Assembly: GCA_002189035.1 (NCBI GenBank)
Contig: NEEC01000359.1
Coordinates: forward strand, 1-18,411
Source of the DNA: Utricularia gibba
Lineage: Eukaryota; Plantae; Magnoliophyta
DNA length: 18,411 bases
Direction of reading: 5' to 3'
Made by a program: the position numbers and the translations under genes. The notes under the pieces are model-generated. The model was given only the letters and a program-made list of their open reading frames with translations. It did not search any database and was not told the DNA's origin. Position 1 is the stretch's first letter; each line of letters starts with the position of its first letter. Shown one piece after another: positions 1 to 18,411 of this stretch.

Positions 1-6
1 AGTTGG

Positions 7-12
7 AAAAAA
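7..12 (-). terminator. Relic RNA polymerase III oligo-T terminator (T6) just 3' of the 5S-like segment; repeated in each monomer
   Basis: AAAAAA on + (TTTTTT on -) begins 3 nt downstream of the aligned 5S 3' end. This call depends on the 5S interpretation. Confidence 0.4.
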
Positions 13-15
13 GTC

Positions 16-134
16 ACATGCTACATCATGAATTTCGTGGCATCACTTATCCCAACACTGTTATATAATCTGGATATGCTTAAATATTTATTTTTAATGA
101 ATCCCGGTGCACGTGTGATTTTTAGGCTGCACCC
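16..134 (-). pseudogene. Highly degenerate 5S rRNA-like segment (copy 1; present once in every 535-bp monomer)
   Basis: Minus strand reads GGGTGC-17 nt-TGCACCGG(G)AT...TGGGATAAGTGATGCCACGAAATTCATGATGTAGCATGT, then GACTTTTTT. Plant 5S consensus (recalled) is GGGTGC-17 nt-TGCACCGGAT...TAGGATGGGTGACCTCCTGGGAAGTCCTCGTGTTGCACCC followed by an oligo-T. Length and spacing match; identity is ~53% by manual alignment. Confidence 0.55.
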
Positions 135-3100
135 CGAATGATGATGCGCAATGAGATGACTATGTCGCACATCCTGATCCGCGAAGCACCGCTCGCATAA
201 CATGCAGATCCTTGCTCTTCATAGCACACTGTTGGGAAGCCCTATTCGAGCTCCAAGTATTATAATTTGGAGTTACGTTTGTCCGATAACTGTGGACATA
301 TTAAAAAAGGGCCACAACGAAAAAGTGTCTCACGTGGCATTCCGTGGTGACTGCATTTAATAATGTGCTTCTTGTTCTCGAAATTGATGGAAACAACATA
401 CAAGTCAAAAGAATCAAATAGCCACTAGAGACATGGTATACGGGAATGGTGCATCAAGAATCAGAAGTATCCTAGCAACTAAATGCATCAATCAACAGCC
501 AAAACATATGGTGTCAGACTTCATCTACTATGCGATCAAGTTGGAAAAAGTCACATGCTACATCATGAATTTCGTGGCATCACTTATCCCAACACTGTTA
601 TATAATCTGGATATGCGTAGATATTTATTTTTAATGAATCCGGTGCACGTGTGATTTTTAGGCTGCACCCCGAATGATGATGCGCAATGAAATGACTACG
701 TCGCACATCCTAATCCGCGAAACACCTCTCGCATAACATGCAGATCCTTGCTCTTCATAGCACACTGTTGGGAAGCCCTATTCGAGCTCCAAGTATTATA
801 ATTTGGAGTTACGCTTGTCCGATAACTCTGGACATATTAAAACAAGCCACAACGAAAAGTGTCTCACGTGGCATTCCGTGGTGACTGCTTTTAATAATGT
901 GCTTCATGTTCTCGAAATTGATGCGAACAACATAGAAGTCAAAAGATCAAATAGCCACTAGAGACATGGTATACGGGAATGGTGCATCAAGAATCAGAAG
1001 TATCATAGCAACTAAATGCATCAATCAACAGCCAAAACATATGGTGTCAGACTTCATCTACTATGCGATCAAGTTGGAAAAAAGTCACATGCTACATCAT
1101 GAATTTCGTGGCATCACTTATCCAACACTGTTAATAATCTGGATATGCGTAAATATTTATTTTTAATGAATCGTGCACGTGTTATTTTTAGGCTGCACCC
1201 CGAATGATGATGCGCAATGAGATGACTATGTCGCACATCCTGGTCTGCGAAGCACCGCCGCATAACATGCAGATCCTTGCTCTTCATAGCACACTGTTGG
1301 GAAGCCCTATTCGAGCTCCAAGTATTATAATTTGAGTTACGTTTGTCCGATAACTGTGGACATATTAAAAACAAGCCACAACGAAAAGTGTCTCACGTGG
1401 CATTCCGTGGTGACTGCTTTTAATAATGTGCTTCATGTTCTCGAAATTGATGCGAACAACATACAAGGCAAAAGAATCAAATAGCCACTAGAGACATGGT
1501 ATACGGGAATGGTGCATCAAGAATCAGAAGTATCATAGCAACTAAATGCATCAATCAACAGCCAAAACATATGGTGTCAGACTTCATCTACTATGCGATC
1601 AAGTTGGAAAAAAGTCACATGCTACATCATGAATTTCGTGGCATCACTTATCCCAACACTGTTATATAATCTGGATATGCGTAGATATTTATTTTTAATG
1701 AATCCGGTGCACGTGTGATTTTTAGGCTGCACCCCGAATGATGATGCGCAATGAGATGACTATGTCGCACATCCTAATCCGCGAAGCACCTCTCGCATAA
1801 CATGCAGATCCTTGCTCTTCATAGCACACTGTTGGGAAGCCCTATTCGAGCTCCAAGTATTATAATTTGGAGTTACGTTTGTCCGATAACTCTGGACATA
1901 TTAAAAACAAGCCACAACGAAAAGTGTCTCACGTGGCATTCCGTGGTGACTGCTTTTAATAATGTGCTTCATGTTCTCGAAATTGATGCGAACAACATAC
2001 AAGGCAAAAGAATCAAATAGCCACTAGAGACATGGTATACGGGAATGGTGCATCAAGAATCAGAAGTATCATAGCAACTAAATGCATCAATCAACAGCCA
2101 AAACATATGGTGTCAGACTTCATCTACTATGCGATCAAGTTGGAAAAAAGTCACATGCTACATCATGAATTTCGTGGCATCACTTATCCCAACACTGTTA
2201 TATAATCTGGATATGCGTAAATATTTATTTTTAATGAATCCGTGCACGTGTGATTTTTAGGCTGCACCCCGAATGATGATGCGCAATGAGATGACTATGT
2301 CGCACATCCTGATCCGCGAAGCACCGCTCGCATAACATGCAGATCCTTGCTCTTCATAGCACTGTTGGGAAGCCCTATTCGAGCTCCAAGTATTATAATT
2401 TGGAGTTACGTTTGTCCGATAACTGTGGACATATTAAAAAAGGGCCACAACGAAAAGTGTCTCACGTGGCATTCCGTGTGACTGCATTTAATAATGTGCT
2501 TCTTGTTCTCGAAATTGATGGAAAAACATACAAGTCAAAAGAATCAAATAGCCACTAGAGACATGGTATACGGGAATGGTGCATCAAGAATCAGAAGTAT
2601 CCTAGCAACTAAATGCATCAATCAACAGCCAAAACATATGGTGTCAGACTTCATCTACTATGCGATCAAGTTGGAAAAAAGTCACATGCTACATCATGAA
2701 TTTCGTGGCATCACTTATCCCAACACTGTTATATAATCTGGATATGCGTAGATATTTATTTTTAATGAATCCGTGCACGTGTGATTTTTAGGCTGCACCC
2801 CGAATGATGATGCGCAATGAAATGACTACGTCGCACATCCTAATCCGCGAAGCACCTCTCGCATAACATGCAGATCCTTGCTCTTCATAGCACACTGTTG
2901 GGAAGCCCTATTCGAGCTCCAAGTATTATAATTTGGAGTTACGCTTGTCCGATAACTCTGGACATATTAAAAACAAGCCACAACGAAAAGTGTCTCACGT
3001 GGCATTCCGTGGTGACTGCTTTTAATAATGTGCTTCATGTTCTCGAAATTGATGCGAACAACATACAAGTCAAAAGATCAAATAGCCACTAGAGACATGG

Positions 3101-4825
3101 TATACGGGAATGGTGCATCAAGAATCAGAAGTATCATAGCAACTAAATGCATCAATCAACAGCCAAAACATATGGTGTCAGACTTCATCTACTATGCGAT
3201 CAAGTTGGAAAAAAGTCACATGCTACATCATGAATTTCGTGGCATCACTTATCCCAACACTGTTATATAATCTGGATATGCGTAAATATTTTTTTTAATG
3301 AATCCGGTGCACGTGTTATTTTTAGGCTGCACCCCGAATGATGATGCGCAATGAGATGACTATGTCGCACATCCTGGTCTGCGAAGCACCGCTCGCATAA
3401 CATGCAGATCCTTGCTCTTCATAGCACACTGTTGGGAAGCCCTATTCGAGCTCCAAGTATTATAATTTGGAGTTACGTTTGTCCGATAACTGTGGACATA
3501 TTAAAAAACAAGCCACAACGAAAAGTGTCTCACGTGGCATTCCGTGGTGACTGCTTTTAATAATGTGCTTCATGTTCTCGAAATTGATGCGAACAACATA
3601 CAAGGCAAAAGAATCAAATAGCCCCTAGAGACATGGTATACGGGAATGGTGCATCAAGAATCAGAAGTATCATAGCAACTAAATGCATCAATCAACAGCC
3701 AAAACATATGGTGTCAGACTTCATCTACTATGCGATCAAGTTGGAAAAAAGTCACATGCTACATCATGAATTTCGTGGCATCACTTATCCCAACACTGTT
3801 ATATAATCTGGATATGCGTAGATATTTATTTTTAATGAATCCGGTGCACGTGTGATTTTTAGGCTGCACCCCGAATGATGATGCGCAATGAGAATGACTA
3901 TGTCGCACATCCTAATCCGCGAAGCACCTCTCGCATAACATGCAGATCCTTGCTCTTCATAGCACACTGTTGGGAAGCCCTATTCGAGCTCCAAGTATTA
4001 TAATTTGGAGTTACGTTTGTCCGATAACTCTGGACATATTAAAAACAAGCCACAACGAAAAGTGTCTCACGTGGCATTCCGTGGTGACTGCTTTTAATAA
4101 TGTGCTTCATGTTCTCGAAATTGATGCGAACAACATACAAGGCAAAAGAATCAAATAGCCACTAGAGACATGGTATACGGGAATGGTGCATCAAGAATCA
4201 GAAGTATCATAGCAACTAAATGCATCAATCAACAGCCAAAACATATGGTGTCAGACTTCATCTACTATGCGATCAAGTTGGAAAAAAGTCACATGCTACA
4301 TCATGAATTTCGTGGCATCACTTATCCCAACACTGTTATATAATCTGGATATGCTTAAATATTTATTTTTAATGAATCCGTGCACGTGTGATTTTTAGGC
4401 TGCACCCCGAATGATGATGCGCAATGAAATGACTACGTCGCACATCCTAATCCGCGAAACACCTCTCGCATAACATGCAGATCCTTGCTCTTCATAGCAC
4501 ACTGTTGGGAAGCCCTATTCGAGCTCCAAGTATTATAATTTGGAGTTACGTTTGTCCGATAACTCTGGACATATTAAAAACAAGCCACAACGAAAAGTGT
4601 CTCACGTGGCATTCCGTGGTGACTGCTTTTAATAATGTGCTTCATGTTCTCGAAATTGATGCGAACAACATACAAGTCAAAAGAATCAAATAGCCACTAG
4701 AGACATGGTATACGGGAATGGTGCATCAAGAATCAGAAGTATCATAGCAACTAAATGCATCAATCAACAGCCAAAACATATGGTGTCAGACTTCATCTAC
4801 TATGCGATCAAGTTGGAAAAAAGTC

Positions 4826-4943
4826 ACATGCTACATCATGAATTTCGTGGCATCACTTATCCCAACACTGTTATATAATCTGGATATGCGTAAATATTTA
4901 TTTTTAATGAATCCGGTGCACGTGTGATTTTTAGGCTGCACCC
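4826..4943 (-). pseudogene. Degenerate 5S rRNA-like segment, representative indel-free copy (copy 10)
   Basis: 118 nt: GGGTGCAGCCTAAAAATCACACGTGCACCGGATTCATTAAAAATAAATATTTACGCATATCCAGATTATATAACAGTGTTGGGATAAGTGATGCCACGAAATTCATGATGTAGCATGT. Manual alignment to plant 5S gives 22/33 matches in the 5' part, ~20/45 in the middle and ~22/40 in the 3' part. Confidence 0.55.
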
Positions 4944-7900
4944 CGAATGATGATGCGCAATGAGATGACTATGTCGCACATCCTGGTCCGCGAAGCACCT
5001 CTCGCATAACATGCAGATCCTTGCTCTTCATAGCACACTGTTGGGAAGCCCTATTCGAGCTCCAAGTATTATAATTTGGAGTTACGTTTGTCCGATAACT
5101 CTGGACATATTAAAAACAAGCCACAACGAAAAGTGTCTCACGTGGCATTCCGTGGTGACTGCTTTTAATAATGTGCTTCATGTTCTCGAAATTGATGCGA
5201 ACAACATACAAGGCAAAAGAATCAAATAGCCCCTAGAGACATGGTATACGGGAATGGTGCATCAAGAATCAGAAGTATCATAGCAACTAAATGCATCAAT
5301 CAAAAGCCAAAACATATGGTGTCAGACTTCATCTACTATGCGATCAAGTTGGAAAAAAGTCACATGCTACATAATGAATTTCGTGGCATCACTTATCCCA
5401 ACACTGTTATATAATCTGGATATGCGTAAATATTTATTTTTAATGAATCCGGTGCACGTGTGATTTTTAGGCTGCACCCCGAATGATGATGCGCAATGAA
5501 GCGACTATGTCGCACATCCTGGTCCGCGAAGCACCCTCGCATAACATGCAGATCCTTGCTCTTCATAGCACACTGTTGGGAAGCCCTATTCGAGCTCCAA
5601 GTATTATAATTTGGAGTTACGTTTGTCCGATAACTGTGGACATATTAAAAACAAGCCACAACGAAAAGTGTCTCACGTGGCATTCCGTGGTGACTGCTTT
5701 TAATAATGTGCTTCATGTTCTCGAAATTGATGCGAACAACATACAAGCAAAAGAATCAAATAGCCCTAGAGACATGGTATACGGGAATGGTGCATCAAGA
5801 ATCAGAAGTATCATAGCAACTAAATGCATCAATCAAAAGCCAAAACATATGGTGTCAGACTTCATCTACTATGCGATCAAGTTGGAAAAAAGTCACATGC
5901 TACATCATGAATTTCGTGGCATCACTTATCCCAACACTGTTATATAATCTGGATATGCGTAAATATTTATTTTTAATGAATCCGGTGCACGTGTGATTTT
6001 TAGGCTGCACCCCGAATGATGATGCGCAATGAAATGACTATGTCGCACATCCTGGTCCGCGAAGCACCTCTCGCATAACATGCAGATCCTTGCTCTTCAT
6101 AGCACACTGTTGGGAAGCCCTATTCGAGCTCCAAGTATTATAATTTGGAGTTACGTTTGTCCGATAACTGTGGACATATTAAAAAAGCCACAACGAAAAG
6201 TGTCTCACGTGGCATTCCGTGGTGACTGCTTTAATAATGTGCTTCATGTTCTCGAAATTGATGCGAACAACATACAAGAAAAAGAATCAAATAGCCCCTA
6301 GAGACATGGTATACGGGAATGGTGCATCAAGAATCAGAAGTATCATAGCAACTAAATGCATCAATCAACAGCCAAAACATATGGTGTCAGACTTCATCTA
6401 CTATGCGATCAAGTTGGAAAAAAGTCACATGCTACATCATGAATTTCGTGGCATCACTTATCCCAACACTGTTATAATCTGGATATGCGTAAATATTTAT
6501 TTTTAATGAATCCGGTGCACGTGTGATTTTTAGGATGCACCCGAATGATGATGCGCAATGAAATGACTACGTCGCACATCCTGGTCCGCGAAGCACCTCT
6601 TGCATAACATGCAGATCCTTGCTCTTCATAGCACACTGTTGGGAAGCCCTATTTCGAGCTCCAAGTATTATAATTTGGAGTTACGTTTGTCCGATAACTG
6701 TGGACATATTAAAAACAAGCCACAACGAAAAGTGTCTCACGTGGCATTCCGTGGTGACTGCTTTTAATAATGTGCTTCATGTTCTCGAAATTGATGCGAA
6801 CAACATACAAGGCAAAAGAATCAAATAGCCCTAGAGACATGGTATACGGGAATGGTGCATCAAGAATCAGAAGTATCATAGCAACTAAATGCATCAATCA
6901 AAAGCCAAAACATATGGTGTCAGACTTCATCTACTATGCGATCAAGTTGGAAAAAAGTCACATGCTACATCATGAATTTCGTGGCATCACTTATCCCAAC
7001 ACTGTTATATAATCTGGATATGCGTAAATATTTATTTTTAATGAATCCGGTGCACGTGTGATTTTTAGGCTGCACCCCGAATGATGATGCGCAATGAAAT
7101 GACTATGTCGCACATCCTGGTCCGCGAAGCACCTCTCGCATAACATGCAGATCCTTGCTCTTCATAGCACACTGTTGGGAAGCCCTATTCGAGCTCCAAG
7201 TATTATAATTTGGAGTTACGTTTGTCCGATAACTGTGGACATATTAAAAACAAGCCACAACGAAAAGTGTCTCACGTGGCATTCCGTGGTGACTGCTTTT
7301 AATAATGTGCTTCATGTTCTCGAAATTGATGCGAACAACATACAAGGCAAAAGAATCAAATAGCCCTAGAGACATGGTATACGGGAATGGTGCATCAAGA
7401 ATCAGAAGTATCATAGCAACTAAATGCATCAATCAACAGCCAAAACATATGGTGTCAGACTTCATCTACTATGCGATCAAGTTGGAAAAAAGTCACATGC
7501 TACATCATGAATTTCGTGGCATCACTTATCCCAACACTGTTATATAATCTGGATATGCTTAAATATTTATTTTTAATGAATCCCGTGCACGTGTGATTTT
7601 TAGGCTGCACCCCGAATGATGATGCGCAATGAAATGACTACGTCGCACATCCTAATCCGCGAAACACCTCTCGCATAACATGCAGATCCTTGCTCTTCAT
7701 AGCACACTGTTGGGAAGCCCTATTCGAGCTCCAAGTATTATAATTTGGAGTTACGCTTGTCCGATAACTCTGGACATATTAAAAACAAGCCACAACGAAA
7801 AGTGTCTCACGTGGCATTCCGTGGTGACTGCTTTTAATAATGTGCTTCATGTTCTCGAAATTGATGCGAACAACATAGAAGTCAAAAGACTCAAATAGCC

Positions 7901-10900
7901 ACTAGAGACATGGTATACGGGAATGGTGCATCAAGAATCAGAAGTATCATAGCAACTAAATGCATCAATCAACAGCCAAAACATATGGTGTCAGACTTCA
8001 TCTACTATGCGATCAAGTTGGAAAAAAGTCACATGCTACATCATGAATTTCGTGGCATCACTTATCCCAACACTGTTATATAATCTGGATATGCGTAAAT
8101 ATTTATTTTTAATGAATCCGGTGCACGTGTTATTTTTAGGCTGCACCCCGAATGATGATGCGCAATGAGATGACTATGTCGCACATCCTGGTCTGCGAAG
8201 CACCGCTCGCATAACATGCAGATCCTTGCTCTTCATAGCACACTGTTGGGAAGCCCTATTCGAGCTCCAAGTATTATAATTTGGAGTTACGTTTGTCCGA
8301 TAACTGTGGACATATTAAAAACAAGCCACAACGAAAAGTGTCTCACGTGGCATTCCGTGGTGACTGCTTTTAATAATGTGCTTCATGTTCTCGAAATTGA
8401 TGCGAACAACATACAAGGCAAAAGAATCAAATAGCCCTAGAGACATGGTATACGGGAATGGTGCATCAAGAATCAGAAGTATCATAGCAACTAAATGCAT
8501 CAATCAAAAGCCAAAACATATGGTGTCAGACTTCATCTACTATGCGATCAAGTTGGAAAAAAGTCACATGCTACATAATGAATTTCGTGGCATCACTTAT
8601 CCCAACACTGTTATATAATCTGGATATGCGTAAATATTTATTTTTAATGAATCCGGTGCACGTGTGATTTTTAGGCTGCACCCGAATGATGATGCGCAAT
8701 GAAGCGACTATGCCGCACATCCTGGTCCGCGAAGCACCTCTCGCATAACATGCAGATCCTTGCTCTTCATAGCACACTGTTGGGAAGCCCTATTCGAGCT
8801 CCAAGTATTATAATTTGGAGTTACGTTTGTCCGATAACTCTGGACATATTAAAAACAAGCCACAACGAAAAGTGTCTCACGTGGCATTCCGTGGTGACTG
8901 CTTTTAATAATGTGCTTCATGTTCTCGAAATTGATGCGAACAACATACAAGGCAAAAGAATCAAATAGCCCCTAGAGACATGGTATACGGGAATGGTGCA
9001 TCAAGAATCAGAAGTATCATAGCAACTAAATGCATCAATCAAAAGCCAAAACATATGGTGTCAGACTTCATCTACTATGCGATCAAGTTGGAAAAAAGTC
9101 ACATGCTACATAATGAATTTCGTGGCATCACTTATCCCAACACTGTTATATAATCTGGATATGCGTAAATATTTATTTTTAATGAATCCGGTGCACGTGT
9201 GATTTTTAGGCTGCACCCCGAATGATGATGCGCAATGAAGCGACTATGCCGCACATCCTGGTCCGCGAAGCACCTCTCGCATAACATGCAGATCCTTGCT
9301 CTTCATAGCACACTGTTGGGAAGCCCTATTCGAGCTCCAAGTATTATAATTTGGAGTTACGTTTGTCCGATAACTGTGGACATATTAAAAAAGGGCCACA
9401 ACGAAAAGTGTCTCACGTGGCATTCCGTGGTGACTGCATTTAATAATGTGCTTCTTGTTCTCGAAATTGATGGAAACAACATACAAGGAAAAAGAATCAA
9501 ATAGCCCTAGAGACATGGTATACGGGAATGGTGCATCAAGAATCAGAAGTATCCTAGCAACTAAATGCATCAATCAACAGCCAAAACATATGGTGTCAGA
9601 CTTCATCTACTATGCGATCAAGTTGGAAAAAAGTCACATGCTACATCATGAATTTCGTGGCATCACTTATCCCAACACTGTTATACACTCTGGATATGTG
9701 TAAATATTTATTTTTAATGAATCCGGTGCACGTGTGATTTTTAGGATGCACCCCGAATGATGATGCGCAATGAAATGACTACGTCGCACATCCTGGTCCG
9801 CGAAGCACCTCTTGCATAACATGCAGATCCTTGCTCTTCATAGCACAGTGTTGGGAAGCCCTTTTCGAGCTCCAAGTATTATAATTTGGAGTTACGTTTG
9901 TCCGATAACTGTGGACATATTAAAAACAAGCCACAACGAAAAGTGTCTCACGTGGCATTCCGTGGTGATTGCATTTAATAATGTGCTTCATGTTCTCGAA
10001 ATTGATGCGAACAACATACAAGGCAAAAGAATCAAATAGCCACTAGAGACATGGTATACGGGAATGGTGCATCAAGAATCAGAAGTATCATAGCAACTAA
10101 ATGCATCAATCAAAAGCCAAAACATATGGTGTCAGAATTCATCTACTATGCGATCAAGTTGGAAAAAAGTCACATGCTACATCATGAATTTCGTGCATCA
10201 CTTATCCCAACACTGTTATACACTCTGGATATGCGTAAATATTTATTTTTAATGAATCCCGTGCACGTGTGATTTTTAGGATGCACCCGAATGATGATGC
10301 GCAATGAAATGACTACGTCGCACATCCTGGTCCGCGAAGCACCTCTTGCATAACATGCAGATCCTTGCTCTTCATAGCACAGTGTTGGGAAGCCCTTTTC
10401 GAGCTCCAAGTATTATAATTTGGAGTTACGTTTGTCCGAAAACTGTGGACATATTAAAAACAAGCCACAACGAAAAGTGTCTCACGTGGCATTCCGTGGT
10501 GATTGCATTTAATAATGTGCTTCATGTTCTCGAAATTGATGCGAAAACATACAAGGCAAAAGAATCAAATAGCCACTAGAGACATGGTATACGGGAATGG
10601 TGCATCAAGAATCAGAAGTATCATAGCAACTAAATGCATCAATCAAAAGCCAAAACATATGGTGTCAGAATTCATCTACTATGCGATCATGTTGGAAAAA
10701 AGTCACATGCTACATCATGAATTTCGTGTCATCACTTATCCCAACACTGTTATACACTCTGGATATGCGTAAATATTTATTTTTAATGAATCCCGTGCAC
10801 GTGTGATTTTTAGGATGCACCCCGAATGATGATGCGCAATGAAATGACTATGTCGCACATCCTGGTCCGCGAAGCACCTCTCGCATAACATGCAGATCCT

Positions 10901-11354
10901 TGCTCTTCATAGCACACTGTTGGAAGCCCTATTCGAGCTCCAAGTATTATAATTTGGAGTTACGTTTGTCCGATAACTCTGGACATATTAAAAACAAGCC
11001 ACAACGAAAAGTGTCTCACGTGGCATTCCGTGGTGACTGCATTTAATAATGTGCTTCATGTTCTCGAAATTGATGCGAACAACATACAAGGCAAAAGAAT
11101 CAAATAGCCACTAGAGACATGGTATACGGGAATGGTGCATCAAGAATCAGAAGTATCATAGCAACTAAATGCATCAATCAAAAGCCAAAACATATGGTGT
11201 CAGAATTCATCTACTATGCGATCAAGTTGGAAAAAGTCACATGCTACATCATGAATTTCGTGGCATCACTTATCCCAACACTGTTATACACTCTGGATAT
11301 GCGTAAATATTTATTTTTAATGAATCCCGTGCACGTGTGATTTTTAGGATGCAC

Positions 11355-11830
11355 AATAATATATACTTTTTAGATTTTAAAAATCAATTATTATATTTAT
11401 ATATTAGCTATGCTTGTGTTTAAAAACTATCAATTCGAATTTAAATATTATAAACTAAATTATATGAATTATTTATTTAGTTACAATATTTATTATTATA
11501 TTAATATCATTTCTTAATTTTTTTTAAATCTAGAATTATTTATCATTTTTTAAATTCTTTTATTTTTATATTTCATTGATTTTACTTTGATGTTTCTAGA
11601 CAATTAGGTTTGTACTTTTCAATGTGTCCTAAATAATTAGACACATACTTTACAATATACTTAAAGAGTAGTTCTTGGTTACCCATAACATCAGTTACCA
11701 CTTTGTATTTAAAATATTATTACTAATATTAAAATTCTAAAACTACTAAAATAAAATTTTATTTGTTTACAATTGACTGTTACAATTTTATTATTTAAAC
11801 AAATATTAATCTTTTTTTTTCATTACTAAT
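11355..11830. other. Very AT-rich low-complexity spacer adjoining the 535-bp array
   Basis: Long A/T runs, almost no CpG, no ORF, and no similarity to either satellite monomer seen by eye. Confidence 0.7.
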
Positions 11831-12300
11831 TGTCAATTGTTGACCACCATCCAATGCTAGTCACCCCACCACACTCACAATGTAATGACTCATTCGTATT
11901 GTCTAAAACAAGTATTTTTCACCATCGCAATGTATATTGATGTCACGTGAACTTTGGCCTATTCATCTTTTCACAAATGCATTCGGGCCACCCTTGGAAT
12001 GTTATGTCATATTTAAAAAACAATATAATTCAATATTTTGATATTTATAGTTGTCACCTGAATTTTGACATATTCACCATTTATAAAGAGAAAGGTGCTC
12101 TCCATCGGGATGTGTGCCATGATTGTGTGGCTCGTTGAGATTCCAAATACGATCATGAGATTTTTAACAAAGGAGGTTGGATTAATGTATTACAAAAGTT
12201 CATACATGCACGATCTACAGGAGCTTCCTAGTTATCCAACCCCTAGTAGTGTAATGACCAAAGCCAAGACAACCTCAAAATGTAGCTTTTTTCAACCGAT

Positions 12301-13229
12301 TGATGTCCAGTGACATCACTCAATTTTGGCATGCTCAATATTCATTCATAGGGGGGAGGGGCATGGGTGAGGTGCTCTCATAGGTGATAGGCCCCACCCT
12401 AGGGTGCCTTGCATCTCTAATGAAACACCATAAAGTTTTTCGATGTTGAGATATCTAGCATTGTCGCCTTCGTTTTGGCATATTCAACATATATATGTCA
12501 TGACATGAGGTGAAGTAGCCCAAGTTGGTCGAAACCTCCTTGTGTGGTGACAAATGTCAATTAGGAGGTTGGTGAAGGTATTGCTTGAGGAGGGGTGACA
12601 ACTAGTGTAGGTTGAGAGGTTTATTAGGAGTTGTGCAGAGCTAGCAAAAACTAGCTAAAGCTGGCGGGAGCTAGTGAGAAGTTTGTTGGCACTGACGGAA
12701 GTCGACACTCACGGGTAGTAGCTGGTGAGAGCTGGTGGGAATTGTTGGCCGCTTGGATGAGTATTGCATGTTGCATGACAGGACACATGGCATGGGTTGA
12801 GCAAGGCATGGGTAATGCATGTGATAGGAAGGTGGATTGTTTGAGCGAGTGTAATGGATGGGAGTTATGGTTAGGGGTGCGATTGTTCATGAAATGGCAC
12901 AACCACCTAAAATGGCACCAAGAAGTATAAAAGGAGAAGGAAGGGCATGCCAAGAGAGGAGGAGAACGACATGCTAAATTCATGCAGAATGTTCCATTTT
13001 GAAGGTTGATCGCACTAGAAGGGAATGGTAAAGAGTTATGGAAGTATACAATAGTGTAGACTTAGCTTTTGAGTCTTTCAAGATGAGGTTTGGATTGTAG
13101 CCAAGCACTCTGACGACAACCCTTAGGGGGTGTGAGTGTGTAGAGAAGCTTATGTGAGCCTTCAGGTAGAATGAAAAAGAGTCTCCTTGGTCAAAACCCT
13201 TATCAACATTCAATGTGCATTCTACATCA
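12301..13229 (+). repeat. Putative 5' LTR (~930 bp)
   Basis: The 3' end ...TCTACATCA (13229) directly precedes the PBS. TGATGT at 12301 is the reverse complement of the terminal ACATCA, matching the TGATG...CATCA termini typical of CRM LTRs. An alternative TGATGT start lies at 11938. No second LTR is available to confirm the start. Confidence 0.5.
12926..12932 (+). promoter_or_regulatory. TATA-box-like motif (TATAAAA) within the putative LTR
   Basis: AAGTATAAAAGGAG lies ~300 bp upstream of the LTR end, a position consistent with an LTR U3 promoter. Confidence 0.45.
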
Positions 13230-13232
13230 ATT

Positions 13233-13243
13233 TGGTACCAGAA
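13233..13243 (+). other. Primer-binding site, degenerate tRNA-iMet type
   Basis: CA-ATT-TGGTACCAGAA versus canonical TGGTATCAGAGC, located 3 nt after the LTR end and ~20 nt before the gag ATG. Confidence 0.75.
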
Positions 13244-13263
13244 GGAGGGCAAGGCTGTTGGCA

Positions 13264-14190
13264 ATGACAGGAAATAGTGGAAGAGGTTTTTCTCATCATG
13301 TGCATTCTAGAAATTGAGATTTTTACTTATTGGAGCAGCATTGTGATACTTTAGAAGCACAACTCAATCAAATGATCACGAACATGAAACAATTGGTATT
13401 GCAACAAGCTCGTATTCTAGTAGTCCCTCATTGGGTACCATCTTTGAGTGAATAAGAACACTTTTCATCTAGTAAATTTGAAGCCAAGAGAGATCATTGG
13501 TGGGGTATTCAATCTCACAGTATCAACAATGATGTGGATTGTCAATGGAAGAATAGTTTTAAAATTGAAATTCTTGAATTTTCTGGAACATTATAGAACG
13601 AGGAGTTTTTTGATTGGTTAGCCACTGTTGAAGAAGCCCTTAATTTTAAGAACATACCGAACAATCACATGATAGCCTTTGTTGCTACAAAATTTCAAGA
13701 ACCAGCTTCAAGATGGGCAAATGAAAACTACAAAGTTGAGAGAAGATTAAGAAGTCTCTCAAAAAGCAATTTCTTTTCTAAAATATCAAAGAATTTTATT
13801 TCAACAATCCCAGAGTTTAAGACAATGTCCGACGCTATGGAAGAGCATGTCAGAGATTTCTATCAATTAATTGCTCGAGTTGATCTTCAGGAGACCGACG
13901 ATCAACTTCTAGAGTGATACATTTCCAACCTTTCCCCTCTTATTTAAGATGTTCTGAATTTGTTTGATCCCTTGTTAATTGAAAAGCTTACCAATGTGTT
14001 TTAGTGGTAAAAATACGATGGAAAAAGGAGGACTCACATTCAAGCAGTCCTACCGTTAGTACTCCCTCACCAACCAAAGAACCATTTTCCTTTTCTATGG
14101 TAAATCCATCGGTGACCCATCCAATCGTAAATGAACTCCTAGTTTAAAGTGCTATACATGTCAGTTTGACCATAAACAAGTAGAGTGTAA
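13264..14190 (+). pseudogene. gag: Disrupted retrotransposon gag with zinc-knuckle remnant
   Basis: From ATG 13264: ...FKIEILEFSGTL*NEEFFDWLATVEEALNFKNIPNNHMIAFVATKFQEPASRW...EEHVRDFYQLIARVDLQETDDQLLE*YISNL. Knuckle CYTCQFDHKQVEC at 14150-14188. In-frame stops and frameshifts present. Confidence 0.85.
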
Positions 14191-14387
14191 GAAGTTTGGA
14201 AAACTAACTATGAAGGTTGAGAATGTTGAGGGATTTGAGGATGATGACGAGGATGTTCGCTTTTCCAATTTATTTGAAGAAGCTATTGAGGAAGAATTTG
14301 TGAGTGGCGATGTGGTGGTGGGTGAAGTGGCAACTTTGTTTAGCTTCAATTGCTTATAGTAACAACTTATAGTTGAAAAATAATATG

Positions 14388-14732
14388 GTTCAAATTACTT
14401 GTACAATAAAGAGAAAGATTTGTAGAGTAGTGATTGATTTCAAATTGGAAGATGCTGTTTCGAAATTGGCATTAGAGTGTGAGTTTCATACGAAGTCGTA
14501 CCATATTGCTTGGTTAGAAAAGCGAGAAGTTCTCAAGGTAGATAAGTGGACTCATGTTACATTCTCTATTGAAAAGGTCTTTAAGGATGAAATTTGGTGT
14601 GATATGATCAAGATGGATCTATGTCATTTACTCTTGAGCCGACCTTGGAAGTATGATCGCAATATAATGCTTACTGGGCAAGCAAATACTTATTCATTCT
14701 CATTTCGGGGCACCAAAGTGGTATTGTTACCA
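14388..14732 (+). pseudogene. Aspartic protease domain remnant (catalytic D-S/T-G motif lost)
   Basis: Within ORF 14373-14840: VQITCTIKRKICRVVID-FKLEDAVSKLAL...YHIAWLEK...DEIWCDMIKMDLCHLLLSRPWKYDR...ANTYSFSFRGTKVVLLP. Confidence 0.85.
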
Positions 14733-14953
14733 AACCGACCAAATTCAAATGACATTATTGTTTCTGTGAACTTGTTCCTTGGCAGGCAACTTATTGAGGA
14801 GATTGGAGGCTCTATAGCTGTGTTACTAATGACTAAGTAGTTGAAATCGCCACAAACAAAATATCCAGATGATACAAAAGAGATATTAGATACCTTTTTT
14901 AAGGTCTTCTCGACTAAACTCCTTGATGTTTATCCCTCTTGCATGATATTTAA

Positions 14954-15520
14954 CACCATATTGATCTTGTCTCAGGTTTATCTTTACCCAATAGAACCCA
15001 TTATCGTATGAGTCTTAGGGAACATCAAGAACTTCGAAAGCAAGTTAAAGTCTTGTTAAGGGCTACATTCGAGAAAGTTTGAGTCTATGTGTTATCTTTG
15101 CCATCTTGATATCCAGAAAGATGACACTTGGAGGATGTGTGTTGATATTCGAATTATCAACAAGATCACTATCAAATATCATTTTTTCTATTTTGACGTT
15201 AAATGATCTTTTGGACCAAATTCATGGAATCAAGGTTATTATACACACTAGGTTTAAAGAGTAGATATAATTGGATAAGAATCTGCCTGGGGACAAATAC
15301 AAGTACTTTCATGCGTGCAATGAATCAGCTATTTCTTCTTTTTATTGGTTGTTTCTAAATTGTTTATTTCGATGACATGCTAATCTTTAGTTGATAGTGA
15401 TTCTTTCAAACACCATGTTCAAGAGGTTCATAGAGTTCTCAAATAAGGATAGTTTTTTGGTTCTCCTCACAAGTGTATCTTCATTGTTCCCAAGGTGATA
15501 TTCTTAGGATATATCATTTA
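14954..15520 (+). pseudogene. Reverse transcriptase domain remnant
   Basis: HHIDLVSGLSLPNRTHYRMSLREHQELRKQV, WRMCVDIRIINKITIKY, LNDLLDQIHG, STFMRAMNQ, VYFDDMLIFS (YFDD at 15365-15376) and IFLGYII, spread over several frames with stops. Confidence 0.9.
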
Positions 15521-15790
15521 TGGTTATGCATTGAAAATGGTTCTCACAAAGGTGTGTGCATTCTAGGCATGACTATCACCCTCAACACTTATGAAAATTT
15601 GATGTTTTCATGATCTAGCATCTTTTCATTGATGGTTTTTTCCTCATTTTAGCTCTCTTATGGCGTCGATGACTGATTGCATAAAAGGAAGCTCCTTTAT
15701 TTGAACCATAGTAGTTGAAGATGCATTTCAATGACTAAAGAATATTCTTATGACACCTCATGTGCTCATCTTTCCAAACTTTCTCAATCA

Positions 15791-16139
15791 TTCGAGCTGC
15801 ACTGTGATGCATCAATGTCTGGAGTTGGCACTATCCCAAAGTCAGGCAGGCTGTTGAATTGCATATTTTAGTGAGAAGGTGGGCATCGAAAAGTCTAATT
15901 ACTCCACCTATGATCTAGAGTTGTTTTCGTTGGATCAAACTATCAAACATTGGTGACATTATTTGTTACAACAAGATTTCATCTTATGGACTGATCATGA
16001 TTCACTAAAGCATTTGAAGTCATAGGATAAGGTTTCACCTCATCATGTTAAGTGATTTTCGTACCTACAACAGTTTACGTGGTCTATCAAGCACAAGAAT
16101 GAGTGTCAAAATCGAGCAACTGATGCACTAAGTCGTAAA
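15791..16139 (+). pseudogene. RNase H domain remnant
   Basis: FELHCDAS, IAYFSEK, NYSTYDLEL, IKHW*HYL, WTDHDSLKHL, YLQQF and NRATDALSRK are recognisable gypsy RH motifs with stops. Confidence 0.88.
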
Positions 16140-16258
16140 CAATCTTGTTTGTTCATATTGAAGATAACTGTTGTTGGCTTCGAGATCCTAACATCTCTCA
16201 ATGCTATGGATCCTTACTCTCCTTTGTGATGGAAGGCCTAACCGGTGGATTTCCTACT

Positions 16259-16385
16259 GATTATACCTTGTTGAATGAGAATTTATTCAAGGGCTATCGA
16301 TTTTGTATACTAGACTCTAGCCTATGTCTTCATCTAATTCATGAGGTACATAGTGAGAGGCATGTAGGTTGATACCGTACACTAT
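16259..16385 (+). pseudogene. Integrase N-terminal (Zn-binding) fragment, truncated
   Basis: DYTLLNENLFKGYRFCILDSSLCLHLIHEVHSERHVG*YRTL matches the gypsy 'L(C/R)IP..SLR..II.E.H..GH.GRD(K/R)T' region. Similarity stops after this; no DDE core, PPT or 3' LTR seen. Confidence 0.75.
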
Positions 16386-17047
16386 TCTCACCATTGGCGC
16401 TCTCGTGTCAATTTCTAAGTTGATGTCCTGCTTATAAGTTTTCCATCTTTCATTGACACTGTCTTCTACACCATGTTTAATGAAAGTCACTACAGGTGAA
16501 AATCCTGATTATTTCACCATGTTTGATGAAGATTATTTTGGCATGTTGAGTTGAAGGTTCATATATCTAATGACAGGGAGCTACGTGGGATCCTGATGGG
16601 CGTATGCTACTCCTTTCATTCTTGGAATCGTGTACATTAGGTTCAATTCACTTTGCATCCAGACCGCCATCACTAGGTTTATCTCAATTTTTCTGAATGC
16701 CTATTTAATTGTAGTTCTGAGATATAATTTCTTCTAAGTTGAACAATAATGGCCTCTGTTATCATTGTGGGTTAACCTCGTCACCTCCTTTGCATGATTT
16801 CCCCGCCAACGCCCCCAAAACATCATTTTGATATGCAGTCATGGTTTCCATTTCAGATGCGCATCTGCTTCCGGTTGAGTTGCCAGAGATCAAAACCTTG
16901 ATTGGCAGGTAGGCAAACCCGATTTCAAGTGTCTGAGGATTTGTCCTCTTTCAGCGGACTGCATGTACTAGATTGATATGTTTGGAATACCTTATGTAGG
17001 TGTCTCTTTATGTTTTTATTGTTAATTCATTGGATCCTGGAATATTC

Positions 17048-18411
17048 TGGCTGCCTACATGGTTTCTCAAGGAAAAGCTTGTCGTTTTTGGGCTGGTGAT
17101 GTCGTTGTGAACTTCGTTCTGACCCAAGGTTCTCTGACTCCTTTGCCACATCGGGTCCTACTCGACGAAAATCGTGCTGCACTTATTGAAGTTAGGATGT
17201 CATAAGCACCCAAAATGGTTTTTCTCAACCGCATGCTTTATATCTGAGGAGGCGCTCTCGTGGGGCAACGGTATCGAGAAGGAGGTCGAGTCGAGCTCGG
17301 GCCCATAGTCATTTGTTGCTCGGCAAAAAACTTGATGCATTTCTTAACGTTGGGTTTTAATTGGCTGCCTACATGGTTTCTCAAGGAAAAGCTTGTCGTT
17401 TTTTGGCTGGTGATGTCGTTGTGAACTTCGTTCTGACCCAAGGTTCGGTCTGACTCCTTTGCCACTTCGGGTCCTACTCGACGAAAATCGTGCTGCACTT
17501 ATTGAAGTTAGGATGTCATGAGCACCCAAAATGGTTTTCTCAACCGCATGCTTTATATTTGATAAGGCGCTCTCGTAGGGCAACGGTATCGAGCAGGTGG
17601 TCGAGTCGAGCTCGGGCCCATAGTCATTTGTGGCTCGGCAAAAAACTTGATGCATTTCTTAACGTTGGGTTTTAATTGGCTGCCTACATGGTTTCTCAAG
17701 GAAAAGCTTGTCGTTTTTGGGCTGGTGATGTCGTTGTGAACTTCGTTCTGACCCAAGGTTCGGTCTGACTCCTTTGCCACTTCGGGTCCTACTCGACGAA
17801 AATCGTGCTGCACTTATTGAAGTTAGGATGTCATGAGCACCCAAAATGGTTTTCTCAACCGCATGCTTTATATTTGATAAGGCGCTCTCGTAGGGCAACG
17901 GTATCGAGCAGGTGGTCGAGTCGAGCTCGGGCCCATAGTCATTTGTGGCTCGGGCAAAAAACTTGATGCATTTCTTAACGTTGGGTTTTAATTGGCTGCC
18001 TACATGGTTTCTCAAGGAAAAGCTTGTCGTTTTTGGGCTGGTGATGTCGTTGTGAACTTCGTTCTGACCCAAGGTTCGGTCTGACTCCTTTGCCACATCG
18101 GGTCCTACTCGACGAAAATCGTGCTGCACTTATTGAAGTTAGGATGTCATAAGCACCCAAAATGGTTTTCTCAACCGCATGCTTTATATCTGAGGAGGCG
18201 CTCTCGTGGGGCAACGGTATCGAGAAGGAGGTCGAGTCGAGCTCGGGCCCATAGTCATTTGTTGCTCGGCAAAAAACTTGATGCATTTCTTAACGTTGGG
18301 TTTTAATTGGCTGCCTACATGGTTTCTCAAGGAAAAGCTTGTCGTTTTTTGGCTGGTGATGTCGTTGTGAACTTTCGTTCTGACCCAAGGTTCGGTCTGA
18401 CTCCTTTGCCA
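17048..18411. repeat. Tandem satellite array, ~315-bp unit (dimer of ~157-bp subunits), 4 complete copies + partial; truncated by right window edge
   Basis: TGGCTGCCTACATGG recurs at 17048, 17362, 17677, 17993 and 18308 (periods 314, 315, 316, 315). The monomer differs from the 535-bp repeat. Confidence 0.98.

Follow-up and report, generated by a model that had tools for sequence, protein, structure and literature searches.

A 535-bp satellite array of Utricularia gibba that probably descends from a decayed 5S ribosomal DNA unit

The satellite array and its 5S-like segment

The DNA analysed here, referred to throughout as the window, is a stretch of 18,411 nucleotides from Utricularia gibba (contig NEEC01000359.1, positions 1 to 18,411). 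Positions 1-11354 are a head-to-tail satellite array, in which a repeat finder combined with an anchor search delimited 21 complete monomers of 530-537 bp and a truncated last unit. On its minus strand, every monomer carries one collinear, full-length relic of a 5S rRNA gene, extending from the first nucleotide of the gene to the oligo-T site of RNA polymerase III (pol III) and about 54% identical to plant 5S. We consider it probable that the satellite as a whole descends from a nuclear 5S ribosomal DNA (rDNA) unit made up of a 119-nt gene and a spacer of about 417 bp. The features on which the following account depends are these:

1-11354, 5S sense on the minus strand: array of the ~535-bp satellite, with spacings of 530-537 bp, running off the window at position 1
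4811-5346, minus strand: representative monomer, comprising the 119-nt 5S relic and about 417 bp of probable former spacer, with boundaries set by anchor search
4825-4943, minus strand: one of the decayed full-length 5S rRNA gene relics, taken as representative and corresponding to minus-strand consensus 404-522
4817-4822, minus strand: oligo-T run (T6), starting 3 nt past the 3' end of the relic, at the site expected for a pol III terminator
Relic starts 1-11, minus strand: 134, 670, 1200, 1734, 2269, 2800, 3334, 3871, 4407, 4943, 5479
Relic starts 12-21, minus strand: 6012, 6542, 7077, 7612, 8148, 8683, 9218, 9753, 10288, 10822
11236-11354, minus strand: truncated terminal unit, its boundary aligned locally, starting at consensus 406 (the relic start being 404)

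The monomers are highly alike, with a mean pairwise identity of 0.970 (range 0.942-0.996) in a MAFFT alignment, and GC content is 0.41 across the array, falling to 0.28 just past its end. Tandem Repeats Finder did not report the array because the longest period it considered was 500. The 21 minus-strand segments measure 114-119 nt (mode 118) from GGGTGC to TGTAGCATGT, and the arrangement of GGGTGC, 17 nt and TGCACCGGAT is exact in 13 of them and present in 20 when small variation is allowed. Behind the 3' end follow GAC and a run of five or six Ts in all 22 copies, so that an oligo-T run sets in 3 nt past the relic's end, as the terminator of a 5S gene would. An earlier note on this DNA, made from the sequence alone, had described such a segment with its downstream T-run in each monomer and had taken it for a 5S unit that decayed as a pseudogene and was then re-amplified; the segment itself was readily found again.

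Comparison with plant 5S genes

The reference for 5S consisted of 22 distinct 119-nt genes of plant type from metagenome contigs and not from the host. These contigs had been probed with a 24-mer, which led to 120 loci, and many full-length 5S genes were confirmed by Rfam in 20 of the loci at 70-115 bits. The fetched genes have the same 5' hexamer as the relic, the same 17-nt spacing to TGCACCGGAT and the same length, with T-runs 0-8 nt downstream, in agreement with the layout of plant 5S genes that the earlier note had given (GG(G/A)TGC, 17 nt, TGCACCGGAT, ~119-120 nt, T-run). Unit periods in the fetched functional 5S loci range from about 290 to 1000 bp. Among the loci, four (L028, at 609-727, L016, L030 and L075) hold 5S arrays rich in degenerate copies, which Rfam scores at anything between 115 and 39 bits, and in another (L004) a tRNA gene sits between two 5S genes.

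Since the hypothesis concerns a complete gene, the alignment was made global in 5S and local in the satellite: the 119-nt gene was aligned over its whole length to a monomer and a quarter, on both strands and with the satellite ends left free. The top-scoring alignment fell at minus-strand consensus 404-522, which is the place and strand that had been claimed, and contained 65 matches, 23 transitions and 29 transversions (52 substitutions) along with 4 gap columns. The earlier count of about 53% identity thus reappears as 65 of 121 columns (54%), and the roughly 20 C>T or G>A changes it had listed among some 52 substitutions as 17-21 of 52, depending on scoring. With a gap-opening penalty of -4 or -6 the alignment stood at z 5.3-8.2, against shuffled monomers as well as against shuffled 5S. 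Its score was reached by 9 of 60,000 dinucleotide shuffles under neutral scoring and by 1 of 60,000 when transitions were scored at -0.5, corresponding to empirical p-values for whole-gene collinearity of 1.5e-4 to 1.7e-5, and by none of 411 real non-5S plant chunks in three scoring schemes.

The controls gave no comparable signal. A reversed 5S query scored like the null, the second satellite of the window, with a period of 315 bp, gave z 0.8 and -0.6, and the 417-bp spacer part of the monomer itself gave z 0.19 and -0.53 and held no second 5S-like segment. Parts of the gene also found their own places when the whole monomer was searched on both strands. Block 1-35 alone was placed at consensus 404 (z 5.2) and block 81-119 alone at consensus 485 in both schemes, both collinear with the full alignment, while block 50-119 alone was placed collinearly, at consensus 452, with the transition-lenient scheme only. 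In a relaxed blastn of the monomer against the 120 loci, positions 407-536 matched the 5S gene and its terminator and nothing else matched comparably. The T-run adds to this, for a run in this register has a chance of about 0.1 per 11-nt window (there are 5 such runs per 536 nt of the relic strand) and thereby contributes roughly another factor of ten of support for a 5S origin.

Several results weigh against a 5S origin and have to be set beside these. The middle block of the gene (36-80), searched alone, was not placed at its collinear position. A lenient gap penalty (-2/-1) brought the whole-gene test to p 0.02-0.1 only, so that its significance rests on a scoring choice made post hoc; the penalty was picked after the data had been seen, and we discount the p-values by about one order of magnitude, after which they are still small. 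Standard detectors did not respond. Rfam matched nothing in the whole window at its gathering scores and no 5S on 1.1 kb at E<=10 with laxer filters, and the relic stays below the RF00001 gathering threshold of 38 bits, where real genes score 70-115 bits. A plant-only covariance model built from the 22 reference genes and run with filters off had a top score of 9.7 bits (E 0.45), obtained for one monomer with the register displaced, and the same model gave 9.0 bits to unrelated window DNA at 14.0 kb. The 5S profile in nhmmer --max picked up no more than the TGCACCGGAT island (E 1.5-3), a blastn comparison of monomer and 5S was not significant (E 0.1-0.2), and the local Smith-Waterman score (+1/-1 or +2/-3) was matched by 15-20% of dinucleotide shuffles (p 0.15-0.2). 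Finally, the 45 nt upstream of the relic were no closer than chance to 249 distinct plant 5S upstream sequences of 47 types (p ~0.7). The earlier note had been right that standard rRNA annotation would miss the segment. It had also named three outcomes that should together refute its claim, and two of them, a covariance-model search that finds nothing even with filters off and a Smith-Waterman score no better than that of shuffled monomers, were obtained or nearly so, the latter with metagenome plant 5S in place of the host's own.

Chance is a rival reading of the resemblance: an unrelated satellite would happen to carry a 10-mer, a 6-mer and a T-run in a 5S-like register, and the alignment would have been over-read. 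In its favour, every standard local or profile detector is non-significant, and an identity of 54% is near the best that shuffles attain, the null alignments having 61 matches on average, albeit with some 10 gap columns. Very many windows had been examined, the favourable gap penalty was chosen afterwards, and neither spacer nor upstream similarity was found in the 5S of other plants. Chance nevertheless appears an unlikely explanation to us, given whole-gene p-values of 1.5e-4 to 1.7e-5 with a score that no real sequence among 411 attained, the null outcome with the reversed query, the second satellite and the spacer, the collinearity of separately searched blocks and a T-run that is in register in all copies. 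As to the spacers, blastn of the monomer against those in the 120 plant loci returned two weak matches (L113 and L114), neither of them in a 5S spacer; the lack of likeness to the spacers of other plants is uninformative because spacers evolve fast. A satellite derived from 5S rDNA should be a homogeneous head-to-tail array of many monomers, as is the case here (21 monomers, 97% alike), and should hold a segment homologous to the 5S gene beyond chance, which the whole-gene alignment finds and the local tests do not. What keeps the 5S origin standing is solely the greater power of the whole-gene collinearity test over the local ones.

State of the relic and a possible mobile-element origin

The relic is dead: its promoter boxes are eroded, it has no 5S fold and no covariance model recognizes it. 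Plant 5S genes have a box A, an intermediate element and a box C, and there the relic is identical to the plant consensus at 7 of 15, 2 of 6 and 10 of 18 positions, respectively, while the published degenerate motifs for box A and box C are absent from the monomer. Of 37 consensus base pairs, 20 can still form. The minimum-free-energy fold of the relic lacks the 5S topology, and shuffles fold just as well (z +0.76). The non-functionality that the earlier note had predicted is therefore borne out by eroded boxes, a missing fold and the lack of a covariance-model match; its statement that helix I and boxes A/IE/C are broken holds for the boxes but not for helix I, in which 7 of 9 pairs are still formable, two of them as G-U wobbles. 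Per-site variation among the copies is 0.0168 in the relic and 0.0172 in the rest of the monomer, and this equality leaves no sign of constraint on the relic.

The condition of the promoter region also bears on the idea that the 5S sequence arrived with a mobile element, the array being a tandem series of Cassandra-type TRIM elements (miniature retrotransposons with terminal repeats) with a unit of one long terminal repeat (LTR) plus internal domain. Such elements occur in long tandem arrays resembling 5S rDNA, with 5S sequence, a pol III promoter and a terminator in their LTRs (PMC7215508); as in the present array, these are head-to-tail units of about 0.5 kb with one 5S-like segment each, and in some families LTR and internal domain together come to about 500 bp (bioRxiv 10.1101/2023.07.14.548913). 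Cassandra is defined by a methionine-tRNA primer-binding site (PBS), a polypurine tract and a conserved core of about 70 bp, the internal control region, that it has in common with 5S (bioRxiv 10.1101/2023.07.14.548913). None of these was found in the monomer, including the functional-looking control region. No PBS (TGGTATCAGAGC) occurs anywhere in the monomer with up to 2 mismatches. Matches at 9 of 12 positions are no more frequent per monomer than chance predicts. The two best of these are on the strand opposite to the 5S sense, and the lone sense-strand match is situated some 55 nt upstream of the relic and not downstream. The published search signature and the box A and box C motifs are missing from both strands. 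Moreover, the control region of about 70 bp, which Cassandra conserves, is the worst preserved part here, with eroded boxes and a block 36-80 that is not collinear alone, and the best preserved is gene 1-35, from the first nucleotide on. A Cassandra-type origin is thus very improbable.

Less credible still is a coding origin, in which the monomer would be the decayed remains of a protein-coding fragment, such as a transposon ORF1, and its 5S likeness incidental. The five longest open reading frames (ORFs) of the monomer (35-72 aa) gave a best Pfam E of 0.046, to unrelated families below the cut-off, and in translation the monomer did not significantly match a transposase or a Myb/SANT-like ORF1.

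Age and mode of decay

If the satellite derives from 5S rDNA, a unit would have lost its function and from then on evolved as ordinary satellite DNA, with unequal crossing-over, gene conversion or re-amplification holding the copies at 97% likeness as the whole family drifted away from 5S. The relic differs from 5S by about 0.7 substitutions per site (Kimura two-parameter), which is close to saturation and, since the alignment was optimised, an underestimate. Copies diverge from one another by about 0.03, at least twenty times less, from which it follows that decay long predates the last homogenisation.

The satellite is not confined to this array. In the public run with the most satellite words, word depths summed over the monomer come to 10^5-10^6, which makes the family very abundant in the organism of that run, and the satellite also turns up in runs labelled as plant and aquatic metagenomes. 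Contigs 88-97% like the satellite are present in runs labelled as three other organisms (B, C and D), which makes the decayed family older than the present array. The data fit either the re-amplification of one dead unit or the decay of a whole orphaned array under concerted evolution; because of those same contigs we lean towards a long-lived family with repeated turnover. Of the original proposal of a former 5S unit that decayed and was re-amplified, the 5S origin is upheld by the collinear alignment, the terminator in register and the clean controls, while the mode of decay and the order of events are not: pseudogene decay followed by re-amplification describes the data no better than continuous concerted decay of the entire array.

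The mode of decay had been attributed to methylation, for which there is little to be seen. Transitions make up 0.44 of the substitutions against 0.345 +/- 0.06 in null alignments (p ~0.06), and the variants among copies comprise 21 transitions and 28 transversions. The observed/expected ratio of CpG in the monomer is 0.90, and TG and CA are in excess. One variant lies at 4878 and the equivalent positions of other monomers (T to G in the 5S sense). It makes up 36% of the depth in the public run richest in satellite words and occurs in every aligned contig of organisms C and D, in one of the two of organism B and in the array's terminal unit. Under the neutral alignment its base is that of 5S; it is the one well-supported relic variant in a partial read table and is likely to be the older state. 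Within the array, 2 of 5 variant events pointed towards 5S, too few to carry any weight.

Relation to known 5S-derived repeats

Satellites related to 5S rDNA are a described kind of repeat. Kumke et al. in 2016 reportedly described one derived from 5S rDNA on the B chromosome of Plantago lagopus, Martins et al. in 2006 the 5SHindIII satellite of Hoplias malabaricus, and Vittorazzi et al. in 2011 are said to have reported on the PcP190 satellite of hyloid frogs. The cases in Plantago lagopus and in the fish Hoplias appear in the reference list of PMC12692304. The assertion that a decayed 5S combined with high homogeneity is unusual was therefore too strong. As far as the entry in that list tells, the Plantago B satellite is similar to ours in being a plant satellite traced to 5S rDNA, in large arrays outside the functional 5S role. 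The difference, going by its description there, is that it is recognisably 5S-like, whereas the relic in the present array is about 46% diverged and escapes detection by Rfam, hidden Markov model (HMM) and BLAST-type searches. Like PcP190 (PMC11675491) and 5SHindIII, the present monomer combines a region of about 120 bp resembling the 5S transcript with a variable remainder, and the family is apparently long-lived across species. Those satellites are of animals and have shorter units (about 190 bp for PcP190), and in them the 5S-like part is reportedly the conserved part, whereas here it is as variable as the remainder. With functional plant 5S rDNA the monomer shares a 119-nt gene, a T-run and a spacer of a few hundred bp; it differs in that the gene is dead and scores far below the 38-bit gathering threshold.

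A full-text literature search with six 20-mers of the satellite matched no paper, and nothing relevant was found in the literature on Utricularia 5S or satellites. The khipu satellite of Phaseolus is similar in length (528 bp) and has a different, unrelated sequence. If the 5S origin is accepted, the array is a further plant case of a housekeeping RNA gene array turned bulk satellite, and the known picture of how satellites arise is unchanged by it. The relic is too eroded for annotation of the Rfam, HMM or BLAST type and is still recovered by the test of whole-gene collinearity, and the rDNA origin of old satellites may accordingly be under-counted. Alignment that is global in the query, with a shuffle null, offers a cheap way to seek satellites derived from rDNA.

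Array end and flanking DNA

Read in the 5S sense, the first satellite nucleotide of the array is nucleotide 3 of the relic, and unrelated AT-rich DNA abuts it immediately (window 11352-11360). If breakpoints are random, a junction lying no more than 3 nt from the pol III start has a chance of about 1%, and this is a single junction, one end of the array lying in the window. The founder could on this account have been copied from a pol III read-through transcript running from +1 through the spacer and further units, the copy being integrated as cDNA, or made circular, before it expanded. The junction may be coincidence or may hint at such a transcript- or circle-seeded founder; we regard the latter as a long shot which, if true, would mean that RNA mediated the birth or seeding of a satellite array.

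Beside the array lie about 500 bp (11355-11850) of very AT-rich DNA (GC ~0.28) with many short A/T runs and no similarity to the satellite. An ORF of 155 aa follows at 14373-14840 on the plus strand; it has no Pfam match, and its nearest ESM Atlas clusters are plant retroviral-type aspartyl protease (RVP_2) and gag-pol proteins (scores 0.92-0.96), and it is probably a degenerate fragment of a Ty3/gypsy-type retrotransposon. We infer that the array itself is heterochromatin-type repeat DNA without RNA function, adjoining a retrotransposon fragment and a second satellite. The latter carries minus-strand ORFs of 86-156 aa that lack a Pfam match and are probably spurious. It is unrelated to the 535-bp family and occupies 17048-18411 with a period of 315 bp in 4.3 copies that are 97% alike, has a GC content of about 0.47 and runs off the end of the window.

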